Assembly: GCF_006345805.1 (NCBI RefSeq)
Contig: NW_021836449.1
Coordinates: 1 to 24,110, forward strand
DNA: 24,110 bases
Source of the DNA: Octopus sinensis
Lineage: Eukaryota
Direction: 5' to 3'
A program made the translations under genes and the position numbers. The notes below the pieces were generated by a model. It did no database searches. It saw nothing but the letters and a program-made list of their open reading frames with translations, and was not told the DNA's origin. Shown here piece by piece: positions 15,691 through 23,936 of the stretch (position 1 is the stretch's first letter; each line of letters begins with the position of its first letter).

Positions 15691-15813
15691 ATGGACAGTA
15701 AGCTTGACTTCATCGTCATTAAGAATGGATCGGATAGCTGCAAAGCTGGATTTCGAGATGACACTACACCAAAGACAGTGATTCCTTCAGTTGTTGCTTA
15801 TTCCCAAAATGAG
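15691..15813 (+). CDS. Divergent actin, coding exon 1 (41 codons)
   Basis: MDSKLDFIVIKNGSDSCKAGFRDDTTPKTVIPSVVAYSQNE aligns without gaps to actin residues 1-41. It ends at gag|GTATGT, the conserved 41/42 phase-0 actin intron site, and has a good start context (caaacATGg). Confidence 0.92.
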
Positions 15814-16256
15814 GTATGTCTTCTTTATATATATATATATATATATATATAATATATAATATATATATATATACATATACTAGTATTATAACCCGATTTC
15901 ATTTTAAAGCTGAGGAATTTTGCTCTAGAGGCCACGCCTTTCAAGTGAGCAAACTCAAAGTTGCCATGCAAACTCCCCAACACTTTTAACATAGGTGTCA
16001 ATCCGACCACATTTACTAACACTTTTGCCTGCACAACTGCTTGTAAGACTACGTCTGCCCTTTTCACAAATAAATAGTAGATATATAATCGCTCTATTTT
16101 TCTTTAGAAGTGTGCTTGTTTCTGACTCACGAATAAGTCACCGATAGTAATATTTATAAAACGCATACTCACGCACTCATTGCATTTATGTGCTTCACTT
16201 AAATACCTAACTTAGATTATGTGTACGGTTGCCATAACATTCCGTATGTATACATA

Positions 16257-16566
16257 CAGTGGCAGACTGGGTCTAGAAATATTGGTTGCCAGGAGACTAA
16301 GGGGACCAACCCACAACTACAAGGGGACCCACTCGCAACTACAATGCTATCATTTAATTTGTTTTTCTTAAAAGTGTTCTTTTCAACTGTCTACAAACGT
16401 AGCCAGGCTGAAATAATTAATGCATTCTTCCAGGAGTGAATAAAAAAATTCTCAAACTTGAGGCGATGGGCCCCTTAGATACTAACATGGGCTCCCTTAT
16501 ATGGATTCTAATGGCGCAGGGGCCCACTTGCCATCGGGCAGCTGGCAACCTGGCAGTCCGCCACTG
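16257..16566. mobile_element. hAT-type MITE (310 bp) in the actin intron
   Basis: 13-bp TIRs cagtggcagactg / cagtccgccactg (12 of 13 match) and a perfect 8-bp TSD tatacata (16249-16256 and 16567-16574). Confidence 0.9.
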
Positions 16567-16730
16567 TATACATACATGCATACATACATGCATGCATGCA
16601 TATATACATACATAGACATATATGTACGTATGTACATGTGTATCTTTCTCTCTCTCTCTCTCTCTCTCTCTCTCCATATATATATATATATATATATATA
16701 TATATATAATATATAATATATATATATATA

Positions 16731-17092
16731 TTACATCGTCGTACTCGGTCGGTTACGACGACGAAGGTTCCAGTTGATCCGATTAAAGGAACAGCCTGCT
16801 TGTGAAATTAACGCGCATGTACCCTTAATGTGGTTCTCGGGAAGATTCAGTGTGACACAGAGTGTGACAAGGGTGGCCCTTTGAAATACGGGTACAACAG
16901 AAACAGGAAGAAAGAGTAAGAGAAAGTTGTGGTGAAAGAGTACAGCTGAGTTCGCCACCAGCCCCTGCCGGAACCTCGTGGAGCTTTAGGTCTTTTCGCT
17001 CAATAAACACTCACAACGTCCGGTCTGGGAATCGAAATCGCGATCTTATGACCGTGAATTTGCTGCCCTAACAGCTGGGTCATTGTGCCTCC
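16731..17092 (-). mobile_element. tRNA-headed SINE, family C
   Basis: Minus-strand head ggaggcacaatgacccagctgttagggc...tttcgattcccagacc with A/B-box-like motifs; no homology to families A or B. Confidence 0.75.
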
Positions 17093-17214
17093 CCACCCAC
17101 AGAGACACACACACATATATACGTATATATATATTTGTATATAAATACACACGCATTATCTATGTATGTGTGTGTATATATATAATATATATATATATAT
17201 ATATATATATATAT

Positions 17215-17655
17215 CTTTTACTTCTTTACTTGTTTCACTCATTTAGCTGTGGCCATGCTGGAGCACCGCCTTTAGTCGAGCAAATCAACCACAGGACTTA
17301 TTCTTTGTAAGCCTTGTACTTATTCTATCGGTCACTTAAGCCGAACCGCTAAGTTACGGGGACGTAAGCACACCAGCATCGGTTGTCAAGAGATGTCTGG
17401 GGGCGGGGGAACAAACACAGACACACAAACACACACACACACACACCACACACACACACACACACACAACACACACACATATATATATACATATATACGA
17501 CGGGCTTCTTTCAGTTTCCGTCTACCAAATCCACTCACAAGGCTTTGGTCGGCCCGAGGCTATAGTAGAAGACACTTGCCCAAGGTGCCACGCAGTAAGA
17601 CTGAACTCAGAACCATGTGGTTCGAAAGCAAGCTACTTACCACACAGTCACTATT
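17215..17655 (-). mobile_element. Family A SINE, near full length
   Basis: Homologous to 3990-4435. Confidence 0.9.
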
Positions 17656-17809
17656 GTATATGCATATTTGTATATCTATATATATTTGTATATCTATATA
17701 TATTTATGCATACATATATATATATATATATATATATATATATATATATATATACATATATATACGTATGCATGTATCTATGTATGTATATATCTGTGTG
17801 TGTGTGTGT

Positions 17810-20739: not shown

Positions 20740-21140
20740 ATCATAAGAAGTACAAGAAATAATCCCATATATCACACAACTTACGAACATCCCCAAACTT
20801 TAATCTTTCCTTTAACTCTCTGACCCAAAGAATCTTTACAACATCAAGAAATCATCCTCTCCCCCACTTCTCAATCACAATAATTCTCTCCGCTTTGCAT
20901 CCAGCTCCGCACTGCACACACGAGGTAAGATTCATCCCAAACCTTCCCTTCAGGTTCAGAACTACGTAATCAACAATACAAACACAAAAACACTTTCAGT
21001 CGCTTCACACCCATAAGGTTGCCATCCCTTACAAAATAACTCATCTATTACCCTAAAACAATCAACCTCACAGCTGGCCTCTATCTTCACCAATCTCCTT
21101 TCCCCTCTTCACCATACACTCTCGATCTGCCTGTCTGCTT
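20740..21140 (-). pseudogene. Very degenerate retroelement debris, possibly an RTE thumb region
   Basis: Purine-biased minus strand with patches (GCEA, TSCVQ, RELKERLK) reminiscent of RTE C-terminal motifs. Confidence 0.3.
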
Positions 21141-21229
21141 CTTTCCTCTCTCTCTCTCTCTCTCTCTCATTCCCTCTTGCTCTCTCTTTGAGGATATCCC
21201 GCTCTTTGGAAACATGGTACAGGATATCC

Positions 21230-22150
21230 ATGCTACAGGGTGTCCCATTCCGGAGAAGGCAAAGCACTTACTCGGTTAACTATTTTCCTATCGAACTTGC
21301 TTCCAACATCTCAAAGATGATGAGAAAGTCATTAACAGTCATATTCCCCAACACCTTCAACCCCTTTCTCTCTTTAAGGGCTATTAAGAAGGTTCTAGAC
21401 CATACTGAGGACCGACTCTTCTATTGAGGATCGACTCTTTTATGTTGCCCACCCGGAAATATCTCACAATGTGGTCATGTCGTTCCTGTCTCCTTCAATA
21501 GCACAAAAGGCACAATCACCACATATATCAAGTAAAAAGAATTACCCCGCATACCTCTCAACATGAAGAGCACGCAACTAAAGCCTTCAAAGTTGCTGCA
21601 AATGCTAGGCATCGCAATCACTGACGATCTCTCCTGGTGAATACACATCTTCACTATAACAGCTTTCCTCTTCACAACCAGAAAATACTTAATCACCTAA
21701 CAACTATCAACCGTGTAGGAAACTCAGATCACAATGCTGCCCTCACTTCCGTGACGGTTCAGCTGAAATATTGACATCCTACTTAGAGAACATCAAAAAT
21801 ATAAAATAAACAAGTCAACCGACTGATTGGCTTCGCGTGGCTGACTGACCCACTTAAACTTCAGGCACACACTTATTTATTTCTTCTCTTTGATCTTTCT
21901 AACTCTACTTTAGAGGTCTGTATTTCTCGAAGCTGGCTGGTCCCGTACTTCCTTCACTCAGACACTCTTAACTCATCCAGCTCTCCTTTCATGCACCTCT
22001 AATTTCTTTCCAGACATTCATCTTCAACTCTATCTTCCTCAGATCATTGGTCCCCTGGAATGCCAATCCTGCGCATGCTATTCCTGTAGTTGTCGACTTT
22101 CAAATGTTCCAGAGGAACATTAAACGCTTTGATCTCACCAGTCTCGGAGA
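21230..22150 (+). pseudogene. Degenerate L2/Crack(CR1-group)-like LINE, RT 3' half
   Basis: Ordered patches across frames: GVP, KDD, ISQCG...VSFNSTK, MLGIAITDDLSW, RLIG, PWNANPAH...FQRNI. They follow the C-terminal motif order of CR1/L2-group RTs. Confidence 0.65.
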
Positions 22151-22339
22151 ACCCTGTGATTTCCAAGAGCACAAGCACTTGGTTTTCACGAGCACAGAAA
22201 GTATAATAAAAATAAGCGAATATTTGGTCACCGTGTAATATTTGTTCAATTCTCGTCTTGCATGAATTGTATGTCTTACTTCTTTACGAAAATCTTTATT
22301 GCTGTTCAGTAAAAGAGACAAAGATCCTTCCCGAGTTAT

Positions 22340-22575
22340 ACAAACTCATACGGGCTGGCTTTCCGGTTTCCGTGGTGCATATATACATTTAACTCCTGGA
22401 CAGGACGCCAGTTCTTCGCAGGGTTATTCATCTTTACCAGCTGAGTGAACTGGAGCAATGTGAAACGGAGTGATTCGCTCAAAGACACAACGCATTGCCT
22501 GGTCCAGGAATCGAAACCACAATCTTTCGATCATGATTCCACTATGTCCTTACCACTATGTCCTTACCACTTTGT
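22340..22575 (-). mobile_element. tRNA-headed SINE, family D
   Basis: Minus strand: B-box ggtttcgattcctgg, then gcgttgtgtctttgagc...cacattgctccagttcactcagctg and ccctgcgaagaactggcgtcctgtccagg. Confidence 0.7.
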
Positions 22576-22919
22576 CCTTGTCTCTATGTCCTTACAAAAT
22601 ATGTCTAGCACTTTGTTTTCATCGAACCCCAGAAATATAAAATGCAAAGTTAAGTTGGACGGTTTTGAACTCAGAAGGAAAGTTTGTAGCAGAATTCCAT
22701 AAAATATTTGTCTAACGCTGGTGATACTCGATGCGTAAGAGAATGTTCTGGATAGAGTTTCAGTTATTCAAGACATTTCACTTTTATTTGGTACCTTTGA
22801 CATAAAAATATAATTTCATTCATTTGTAATTTATTTGTTTCTGTAATTCATATCTGACAATATTTTTTCAAAATTAATTTCAGTTTCTAGGAATTTAATT
22901 ATTGTTTACTGTATTTCAG

Positions 22920-23936
22920 GTGGAAAGTGGATACAAAGGCGGCTATGTTGGAAATGACGTTAAAAGCAAGAGAGGAGACTTTACCTTAAAATACCCTATT
23001 GAACGTGGTATCATAACCAACTGGGATGATATGGAAAAGATTTGGCATCATATATTCAAGAACGAGTTGAAAGTTTCACCCGAAGAGCACCCTGTCTTTA
23101 TGACCGAGACTGTAAATAACCCTAAGGCCAACAGAGAAAAGATGACGAAAATTATGTTTGAAAAATTTAACATCCCTGGCATGTATTTAGGTATACAGTC
23201 TGTATTGTCCCTTTATGCTTCTGGTCGTACGACAGGCATTGTTATTGAGTGTGGGCATGGCACCACCCATATTGTCCCCATATATGATGGGTACACCCTG
23301 GCTCAGGCAGTCACACGTCTTGATTTTGCTGGTAAAGACTTGACAGATTACCTGAGAAAGATCTTGGTTGATAGTGGCTTAACTTTTGCATCAACTGCTG
23401 AGAGAGAAACCATTCGAAATATCAAAGAAGGTTTATGCTATGTTGCCCTAGACTACGAACAGGAAATGAAAACTGCAAACTCCTCTTCATCTCTGGAAAA
23501 GAGTTATACGTTGCCCGATGGACAAGTCATCTCTATGAATCGAGAAAGGTTCCAAGCATCAGAAGCTTTGTTTAAGCCATCTTTAATTAATATCGAATCT
23601 ACTGGTATTCATCAAGCAACTTACAATTCAATCATGAGGTGTGATATCGATGTTAGGAAAGATATGTATGCCAACGCTGTATTGTCCGGTGGTTCCACAA
23701 TGTACCCAGGTATTGCTGATCGCATACAGAAGGAAATCAGTGACCTTGCACCACCCACCATGAAAATTAAGGTCATTGCTCAACAAGATCGTGAAAACTT
23801 TGCATGGATTGGCGGTACTCTGTTGCCTTCTCTGTCCACTTTTGAAAAACAGTGGATTACCAAGCAGGAATACGACGAAGCTGGCCCACAAATCATCCAC
23901 AAAAAATGCTGTCAACCGATAATCGATAACGAATAG
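22920..23936 (+). CDS. Divergent actin, coding exon 2 (338 aa plus stop)
   Basis: Acceptor tttactgtatttcag| in phase 0, then an uninterrupted ORF with actin signatures ([27 protein letters not shown], Yx[16 protein letters not shown], WIxKQEYDE). Confidence 0.97.

Follow-up and report, generated by a model that had tools for sequence, protein, structure and literature searches.

Here we describe an actin-like gene of octopuses, which is encoded in a 24,110-nucleotide (nt) stretch of DNA from Octopus sinensis (contig NW_021836449.1 of assembly GCF_006345805.1, positions 1 to 24,110; this whole stretch is called the window). The gene is a divergent actin paralogue that is present as a single copy and is so far known only from octopuses; it is retained under moderate purifying selection and freed from the extreme constraint of conventional actin. 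The ATP site of actin is among the most conserved sites in eukaryotic proteins; in the octopus protein several of its residues are replaced, and some of them differ between sister species. That it is a retained, divergent paralogue of actin restricted to one lineage can be said with much more confidence than the mechanism proposed below. The gene is already contained in public annotations under automatic names and is uncharacterised.

The gene is located on the + strand and comprises two exons at 15691-15813 and 22920-23936. By direct reading and translation the spliced product has 379 amino acids (aa) and no internal stop. The original prediction, made from the letters of the window, had ended the gene at 23585; this position falls inside exon 2, 351 nt short, and the coding sequence ends at 23936. 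The features of the gene are as follows (residues in actin numbering).

15691-15813, + strand: coding exon 1, from the ATG on 41 codons (Met1-Glu41), carrying the P1 phosphate loop; from the list of open reading frames (ORFs) and the sequence.
15721-15744, + strand: P1 loop codons 11-18, reading K11 (AAG, 15721-15723), N12, G13, S14, D15 (GAT, 15733-15735), S16, C17, K18; from the beta-actin alignment.
15814-22919, + strand: the single intron, 7106 nt, GT...AG, phase 0, at actin codon position 41/42.
22920-23936, + strand: coding exon 2, 338 codons and the TAG stop at 23934-23936; ORF 22902-23936 is in frame with the acceptor.
22920-22943, + strand: exon-2 part of the shortened D-loop (VESGYKGG), which joins SQNE at 15802-15813.
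23004-23006, + strand: R73 codon CGT, replacing the histidine that is methylated in conventional actin; common to the three orthologues and to a second octopus family.
23247-23270, + strand: P2 loop codons 154-161, reading E154 (GAG), C155 (TGT), G156, H157 (CAT), G158, T159 (ACC), T160, H161 (CAT).
23793-23795, + strand: E336 codon GAA, replacing the adenine-contacting lysine; common to all three orthologues.
23910-23933, + strand: C-terminus, F375C and a 7-residue extension QPIIDNE; from the beta-actin alignment.

The exon join is predicted from consensus splice signals (the donor GTATGT begins at 15814, the acceptor ...tgtatttcAG ends at 22919), from the conservation of the frame in two species and from two independent genome annotations which give the same protein. 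The translation of exon 1 equals the first 41 residues of the protein annotated in O. vulgaris and O. sinensis, and the orthologous exon 1 of O. bimaculoides is found at 10001-10123 of its locus (L002). A tblastn search with beta-actin aligned across 22920-23909 with 68% identity and revealed no actin pieces in the window besides the two exons. An Rfam scan of the window gave no match to RNA families.

The octopus protein belongs to the actin family and is modelled with the four-subdomain actin fold. It matches the Pfam Actin family PF00022 over residues 7-371 with E = 1.5e-124 (416 bits, the cut-off being 27), and 243 of 375 residues are identical to beta-actin (64.8%). The best sequence matches among solved structures are cytoplasmic actins (E of about 3e-168, aligned end to end); all top matches are actins and none belongs to an Arp (actin-related protein) class. 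An AlphaFold2 model built from an alignment of 67 sequences reached a mean pLDDT of 90.1 and a pTM of 0.89, with low confidence only at residues 1-3, 42-46 (D-loop, pLDDT below 50) and 374-379 (tail); when only 35 near-identical actins were aligned, the pLDDT was 42.5 and the model poor. The best Foldseek matches of the model are G-actin structures, with TM scores of 0.93-0.98 and a root mean square deviation of 1.1-1.4 A. The gene had been called an intact actin in the original prediction, which agrees with the Pfam match, the 379-aa reading frame and the end-to-end alignment with actin.

The alignment with beta-actin likewise bears out every substitution that had been listed for the pocket (D11K, G15D, D154E, S155C, D157H and K336E) as well as the residues named as retained (S14, K18, Q137, H161, K213, E214 and G301/G302), to which R210, M305 and Y306 can be added. 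H73R and R183K are further changes which had not been listed before. The D-loop is shortened by three residues, with G42-V43-M44 missing exactly at the exon junction, and it carries M47S; R39 and H40 are changed, and the N-terminus is non-acidic (MDSKLDF vs MDDDIAA in beta-actin). S303 counts as no change, as the conventional actin of octopus also has S303. This residue is one of the invertebrate-type states (Y279, S303, S318, P323) which are common to the octopus protein and octopus conventional actin.

How constrained these positions are was judged from an alignment of 67 rows (A3), 29 of them conventional actins. D11 and G15 are identical in 29/29 and K336 in 28/29 of the conventional actins, while D157 is kept in all 28 readable ones and D154 in 27 of these 28, the departure being a coral sequence with W154; one snail fragment lacks the P2 loop. 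The near-invariance which had been assumed for the pocket positions in conventional actins therefore holds in this set, apart from the coral W154 and the one K336 departure. D11K is found in no other of the 67 rows. The octopus protein departs from conventional actins in the pocket residues and H73, in their extreme conservation, in M44 and M47 of the D-loop and in a C-terminus that ends with F375, and 50 of 179 columns (28%) that are invariant in 25 diverse conventional actins are changed in it.

The pocket is not the only part that has diverged; the whole protein has. The D-loop and the N-terminus are most changed, and the nucleotide shell is changed no more than the rest. The proportions of residues changed in comparison to beta-actin are given per region.

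Nucleotide and cation shell (23 residues): 35% in O. vulgaris, 26% in O. bimaculoides.
Rest of the protein: 36%.
D-loop: 80% in O. vulgaris (12/15 positions), 73% in O. bimaculoides.
N-terminus: 70%.
Lateral contacts: 45%.
Longitudinal contacts outside the D-loop: 33%.
Target-binding cleft at the barbed-end face: 26%.

Three orthologous sequences are available for the comparison between species. O. vulgaris and O. sinensis have an identical protein, which is recorded as CAI9735239.1 ('hypothetical predicted protein') in the former and as XP_029657860.1 ('actin-3') in the latter, and because these are two independent assemblies the substitutions are not assembly errors. The O. bimaculoides orthologue XP_014775203.1 ('actin-3') is 92% identical and lies in a collinear locus. 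A third species is represented by a 1190-nt contig from a public sequencing run, whose exon 2 is 85-86% identical and has the acceptor in the same context. The residues of the pocket in these sequences are listed by position.

Position 11: K in O. vulgaris/O. sinensis, D in O. bimaculoides; exon 1 of the third species is not covered.
Position 15: D in O. vulgaris/O. sinensis, D in O. bimaculoides; third species not covered (exon 1).
Position 16: S in O. vulgaris/O. sinensis, T in O. bimaculoides; third species not covered (exon 1).
Position 73: R in O. vulgaris/O. sinensis, O. bimaculoides and the third species.
Position 154: E in O. vulgaris/O. sinensis, O. bimaculoides and the third species.
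Position 155: C in O. vulgaris/O. sinensis, S in O. bimaculoides, S in the third species.
Position 157: H in O. vulgaris/O. sinensis, Y in O. bimaculoides, Y in the third species.
Position 159: T in O. vulgaris/O. sinensis, V in O. bimaculoides, V in the third species.
Position 161: H in O. vulgaris/O. sinensis, H in O. bimaculoides, N in the third species.
Position 336: E in O. vulgaris/O. sinensis, O. bimaculoides and the third species.

The loops of O. bimaculoides read DNGSD and ESGYG, with codon 11 being GAC (D) and codon 16 ACC (T). Common to every orthologue that can be read are G15D (the two Octopus sequences only), H73R, D154E, the loss of D157 (Y or H) and K336E. D11K, S155C, Y157H and V159T arose on the branch of O. 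vulgaris/O. sinensis, the changes in exon 2 being polarised by the third species and D11 by the conventional state. Three of them need two nucleotide substitutions each (D11K, GAC>AAG; S155C, TCA>TGT; V159T, GTC>ACC). The 16 P-loop codons of O. vulgaris differ from those of O. bimaculoides at 8 of 48 nt, compared to 53 of 1089 elsewhere (p = 0.003), and at 5 of 16 residues, compared to 27 of 363 (p = 0.007). The normally most conserved part of actin is therefore the fastest-changing part here. It was also considered if the five nucleotide changes of the O. vulgaris branch in the P2 loop, which lie within 14 nt, go back to a single mutational event; the cluster is not significant (permutation p = 0.16). 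The 'rewired nucleotide pocket' of the original prediction can be kept insofar as all its substitutions are present and a core of them (G15D, H73R, D154E, D157Y/H, K336E) is shared. It is not one stable design, since only O. vulgaris/O. sinensis have D11K, S155C, D157H and V159T, and the third species adds H161N.

The gene is nevertheless under selection. The ratio of nonsynonymous to synonymous substitutions (dN/dS) is 0.33-0.46 between O. vulgaris and O. bimaculoides and 0.26-0.37 in comparisons with the third species, depending on the method, and it is significantly below 1 in all three pairs. For the first pair the Nei-Gojobori proportions are pN = 0.038 and pS = 0.112 (Fisher p = 3e-5); for comparisons with the third species Fisher p is about 1e-9 (lowest 8e-10). 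This dN/dS is far above what is expected for conventional actins. The three coding sequences have the same length, without insertions or deletions (indels) in 1137 coding nt, and the frame is open in all three species, while two blocks of about 1.5 kb in the neighbouring non-coding DNA show 7 and 13 gap events at a Jukes-Cantor distance of 0.070-0.076. Conservation extends to the start codon, the splice sites and the unusual tail at the C-terminus; the tail reads QPIIDNE in O. bimaculoides as well and QPVIDNE in the third species. Exon identity between species is 94.6%, compared to about 93% in the flanking non-coding DNA. Codon usage is nearly unbiased, with an effective number of codons of 54-56 vs 43 for a fragment of conventional octopus actin. 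Neither a processed nor a decaying pseudogene is indicated, given the intron kept at 41/42, the intact frame in three species, the conserved splice sites and the dN/dS of 0.26-0.47, and the earlier argument against a pseudogene is thereby confirmed.

Searches with the whole protein and with its C-terminal 80 residues revealed no orthologue outside Octopus, which describes the collection searched and not nature. Among 1.84 billion cluster representatives nothing is closer to the protein than conventional actin, the maximum identity being 68%; those that cover the full length at more than about 62% identity fall among the top scores, which are of actin scale, and the remaining matches are lower. 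By similarity ranking the octopus protein is placed outside the canonical Arp classes Arp1-Arp10. The proposal of a lineage-restricted actin-like protein outside these classes is in line with the scan.

In the literature search neither the protein accessions nor the sequencing-run identifier of the third orthologue gave a match. The gene is not identified in the octopus gonad and testis papers, and an O. maya testis paper has no relevant entry. The sex-related genes of one gonad study on O. sinensis include an unnamed gene with an 'Actin' domain, which it is not possible to link to the gene described here.

The position and phase of the intron are informative about the origin of the gene. In the conventional actin locus of O. 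bimaculoides (L003) an acceptor is found immediately before G42, at the same position as in the octopus gene. This phase 0 intron at 41/42 together with the invertebrate-type residues points to a DNA-level duplication of an ordinary mollusc actin gene which kept its old intron, and not to retroposition. The conventional locus itself (L003 9995-10971, on O. bimaculoides CM046607.1) is truncated, comprising only residues 42-160 and 275-375, and is annotated as a 214-aa 'actin, cytoplasmic'. In the tree the three orthologues form a fully supported clade with a long stem (0.31-0.51 changes per site) vs crown branches of 0.03-0.12, so that either the age of the gene far exceeds that of the genus or its divergence took place in an early burst. 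By path length its nearest neighbour is octopus conventional actin.

This second family, represented by the O. sinensis protein 'actin-3-like' (XP_036370416.1; L004 10001-14644, on CM016886.1), has the same two-exon structure with a first exon of 41 codons. It shares 17 of 57 derived states of the octopus protein, compared to a median of 4 for other divergent actins; the common states include R37Y, H73R, P109V, T126K, L180F, P332Q, P333Q, Y337N and M355Q. Its pocket is altered as well (H/Y15, N/D154, H157, Q161, D/K336), and its tandem copies also differ among themselves at positions 15 and 154. In contrast to the gene described here it forms a multi-copy tandem array, lacks the C-terminal tail and is only about 50% identical. 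At least four tandem copies are fused in the annotation of O. vulgaris into one protein of 1331 aa (CAI9741788.1), and about 6 kb downstream in the O. sinensis locus another actin-domain gene is called on the other strand. In the maximum-likelihood tree the two octopus groups cluster together with weak support (76/19.6), and placing the octopus protein with the conventional actins instead is not rejected by an approximately unbiased (AU) test (p = 0.41). A common ancestry of the two groups is likely but, like a sister relationship, unproven.

The comparison was extended to 78 divergent representatives of the actin family, which are 38-64% identical to beta-actin. The numbers of representatives in which the pocket positions are changed are given below.

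G15: 30 of 78.
D157: 41 of 78.
H73: 55 of 78.
K336: 47 of 78.
H161: 34 of 78.

Because such changes are frequent in this set, altered phosphate loops are a common feature of non-canonical actins and not peculiar to the octopus gene. D11 is much more stable, being replaced in 9 of the 50 representatives that have G15 or D157 changed, and K11 is found in none of them. Representatives with a changed G15 tend to be changed at D157 too (p = 0.02), and likewise at H161 (p = 5e-5), as counted over the 78 representatives and uncorrected for shared ancestry or overall divergence. One protein from the starfish Acanthaster planci ('actin, clone 302-like', XP_022096717.1) has the same loops, DNGSDS and E-x-G-H-G (ELGHG), that is G15D, M16S, D154E and D157H. 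Unlike the octopus protein it has retained H73 and K336, and its identity is 62-63% to beta-actin and about 50% to the octopus protein. Since it groups with the conventional actins in the tree and keeps these two residues, the motif is most simply explained as a parallel change in starfish and octopus.

In actin the cation-water network is held by D11, Q137 and D154, the phosphates are clamped by the backbone amides of residues 14-16 and 157-159, and the attacking water is positioned by H161 together with Q137. The D-loop residues M44 and M47 reach into the cleft of the adjacent subunit, H73 is methylated in conventional actin, and nucleotide-free actin is unstable. In several nuclear and testis Arps the nucleotide serves as a structural cofactor with little or no ATP hydrolysis. 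In the octopus protein the residues around Mg2+, water and the gamma-phosphate are replaced and unstable (G15D, D154E, D157Y/H, and D11K in O. vulgaris/O. sinensis), and K336 and H73 of the sensor loop are replaced too, while the residues that bind adenosine (R210, K213, E214, G301/G302, M305 and Y306) are retained along with S14, K18 and Q137. The pointed-end-directed face is degraded (D-loop, R39, H40, acidic N-terminus), and the barbed-end groove is comparatively well kept. Judged from these residues, the nucleotide is probably still bound as a structural cofactor, and ATP hydrolysis would be weak or absent; the altered or lost ATPase activity or cation dependence put forward in the original prediction is plausible. 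It is unlikely that the octopus protein alone builds ordinary filaments, as it would be a poor self-polymeriser. Through its intact barbed-end face it may act as a monomeric or end-binding subunit, either on the pointed end of filaments or in a protein complex. Read from residue identities alone, the mechanism as a whole, in which a non-canonical actin hydrolyses ATP weakly or not at all and makes altered contacts in filaments, has our slight preference. Several observations weigh against it. The carboxylate at E154, Q137, S14, K18 and, in two of three species, H161 are kept, so some ATPase activity would be possible. The plug is still hydrophobic (L-I-N-I) and the longitudinal contacts outside the D-loop are changed to an average extent (33%), which would make co-polymerisation with conventional actin possible. 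The P-loop excess on the O. vulgaris branch, with its three two-substitution changes, could be adaptive rather than a loss of constraint, and the exon join is a predicted one.

There are three other explanations. A working actin isoform would bind ATP and Mg2+, hydrolyse and polymerise like conventional actin, the substitutions tuning its kinetics for one tissue. The full actin fold, the retained Q137, S14, K18, K213, E214, G301/G302 and Y306, the carboxylate at 154, the well conserved target-binding cleft, the hydrophobic plug and the purifying selection would all suit such a protein. On the other hand, 4-6 positions among the Mg2+ and gamma-phosphate residues are changed and vary from one sister species to the other, H161, the proposed catalytic relay residue, is lost in one species, M44 and M47 of the D-loop are gone, H73 and K336 are changed, and both the 28% of altered invariant columns and a dN/dS far above the general expectation for conventional actins count against it; we regard an isoform as improbable. 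That the gene is dying, as a young or slowly decaying duplicate without present function, has even less in its favour and is very improbable. The constraint relaxed over the whole protein, the weak codon bias, the missing transcript evidence in the literature search and an exon identity that is only slightly above that of the flanking DNA fit a decaying gene. However, each of the three pairs has a dN/dS significantly below 1, no stop or indel has appeared in three species at a synonymous divergence of up to about 0.25, while the non-coding DNA has gathered 7-13 gaps per 1.5 kb, and the splice sites, start codon and C-terminal tail are conserved. The long stem (0.3-0.5 changes per site) in comparison to the short crown branches moreover implies a long survival.

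Positive selection could also have remodelled the pocket for a new chemistry, either to bind a nucleotide without a divalent cation, with K11 replacing Mg2+ and the carboxylate moved from 157 to 15, or to bind a different ligand. The recurrent G15D, D154E and D157H would then form an alternative design with a function. The three changes on the O. vulgaris branch that need two substitutions each, the significant excess of P-loop differences, the starfish protein with the same motif in a separate part of the tree, and the association of G15 changes with those at D157 and H161 can be read in that way. But three species are too few for a site-wise test, the gene-wide dN/dS is below 1 in all pairs, the states are unsettled within the clade (D or K at 11, Y or H at 157, H or N at 161), and the associations among the 78 representatives carry no correction for ancestry or divergence. 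Remodelling for a new chemistry is accordingly rather improbable. A more specific version, in which G15D, D154E and D157H/Y, with K11 added in O. vulgaris/O. sinensis, form a working alternative phosphate clamp whose carboxylate was transferred from the P2 to the P1 loop in parallel in octopus and starfish, is quite unlikely; if true, it would mean an actin which is locked in one nucleotide state or is independent of a divalent cation. A divergent actin with weakened or lost hydrolysis and altered contacts is the account that we find most likely.

Collinearity between the O. bimaculoides locus and the window extends over about 10 kb 5' of the gene and through the intron. A TATA-like TTTATATA is located at 15644-15651 of the window, about 40 nt 5' of the ATG and right after a long A-run, and O. 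bimaculoides has TTTATTTA. The 250 nt upstream of the gene are about 95% identical between the two species, which is slightly over the neutral level of about 93%. The intron in the window is longer than that of O. bimaculoides, in which the stretch of about 19098-21372 is absent; this stretch is either an insertion in O. vulgaris or a deletion in O. bimaculoides. It falls within 20001-22000, a region of strongly negative GC skew (-0.34 to -0.37), and its ORFs have no Pfam match.

Other parts of the window are repetitive. Positions 1097-1504, 4000-4435, 7976-9032 and 17209-17652 are copies, in both orientations, of a dispersed repeat of about 400 nt, one of which is found inside the intron of the actin-like gene. 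Each copy matches several places in the O. bimaculoides locus, and (CA)n, (TA)n and similar microsatellites lie next to the copies. The copies resemble SINE-type (short interspersed nuclear) elements, which are abundant in octopus genomes. Upstream of the gene, the ORF fragments at 2768-3196 and 6262-7414 look like a decayed retrotransposon. The first gives a weak match to reverse transcriptases (E = 3e-4, below the Pfam cut-off). ORF 6262-6789 has no Pfam match and resembles by eye the C-terminal part of reverse transcriptases from LINEs (long interspersed nuclear elements), and it is adjoined by a C2H2 zinc-finger ORF at 7115-7414.

The O. bimaculoides orthologue is located on CM046617.1 (L002, 57.4 Mb), which is number 17 among the chromosome records of the public assembly. 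In one preprint the Z sex chromosome is 'chromosome 17', a name that refers to a new assembly made there, and another assigns Z to 'chr16' of the public O. bimaculoides assembly. Neither these two preprints nor the O. vulgaris genome paper settle a Z linkage of the gene.

The gene does not represent a new kind of system; it is one more lineage-specific actin-like protein. We consider it modestly interesting for its closeness to actin, the turnover of the catalytic site between sister species, the parallel motif in starfish and the second, amplified octopus family. A paralogue that is near actin (65%) and selected, yet whose Mg2+ and gamma-phosphate residues drift between sister species, is a natural experiment. 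It separates the residues for fold and nucleotide retention, which are kept, from those for hydrolysis and filament dynamics, which are lost. Together with the tandem-amplified family it shows that non-canonical actins of their own have evolved in cephalopods, as they have in flies and mammals.

In comparison to conventional actin the octopus protein has the same fold, a nearly equal length, 65% identity, the intron at 41/42, the adenosine-binding residues, Q137 and the target-binding cleft. It differs by D11K, G15D, H73R, D154E, S155C, D157H, V159T, R183K and K336E, by the D-loop, the non-acidic N-terminus and F375C with the 7-residue tail, and by the 28% of changed invariant columns and a dN/dS of 0.26-0.47. 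With 65% identity to beta-actin it is also closer to actin than the sampled divergent members of the family (38-64%), and it has no N-terminal extension.

The E-x-G-H-G pattern had been likened to the mammalian testis ACTL7 proteins, which led to the suggestion of a convergent, possibly sperm-specialised protein. A paper on ACTL7A/B gives no description of the pocket residues. Because of the 65% identity to actin and the missing N-terminal extension (the alignment starts at actin residue 1) a kinship with ACTL7 is unlikely, and germline-expressed lineage-specific Arps would fit the sperm idea by analogy only. Known non-canonical Arps of single lineages are Drosophila Arp53D and other testis Arps (PMC7038667, PMC8291977), mammalian ACTL7A/B, ACTRT1-3 and ACTL8 (PMC10925299, bioRxiv 10.64898/2026.08.21.746286), and the divergent sponge actin HdA6 (PMC12146513). 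Fast-evolving but retained lineage-specific duplicates of actin and Arps, which in flies and mammals are often expressed in the germline, are a recurrent pattern (PMC7038667, PMC8291977). The octopus gene resembles Arp53D, ACTL7, ACTRT, ACTL8 and HdA6 in being a duplicate of one lineage that evolves faster than its parent and is retained, while the kinship seen with them is that of the actin family.

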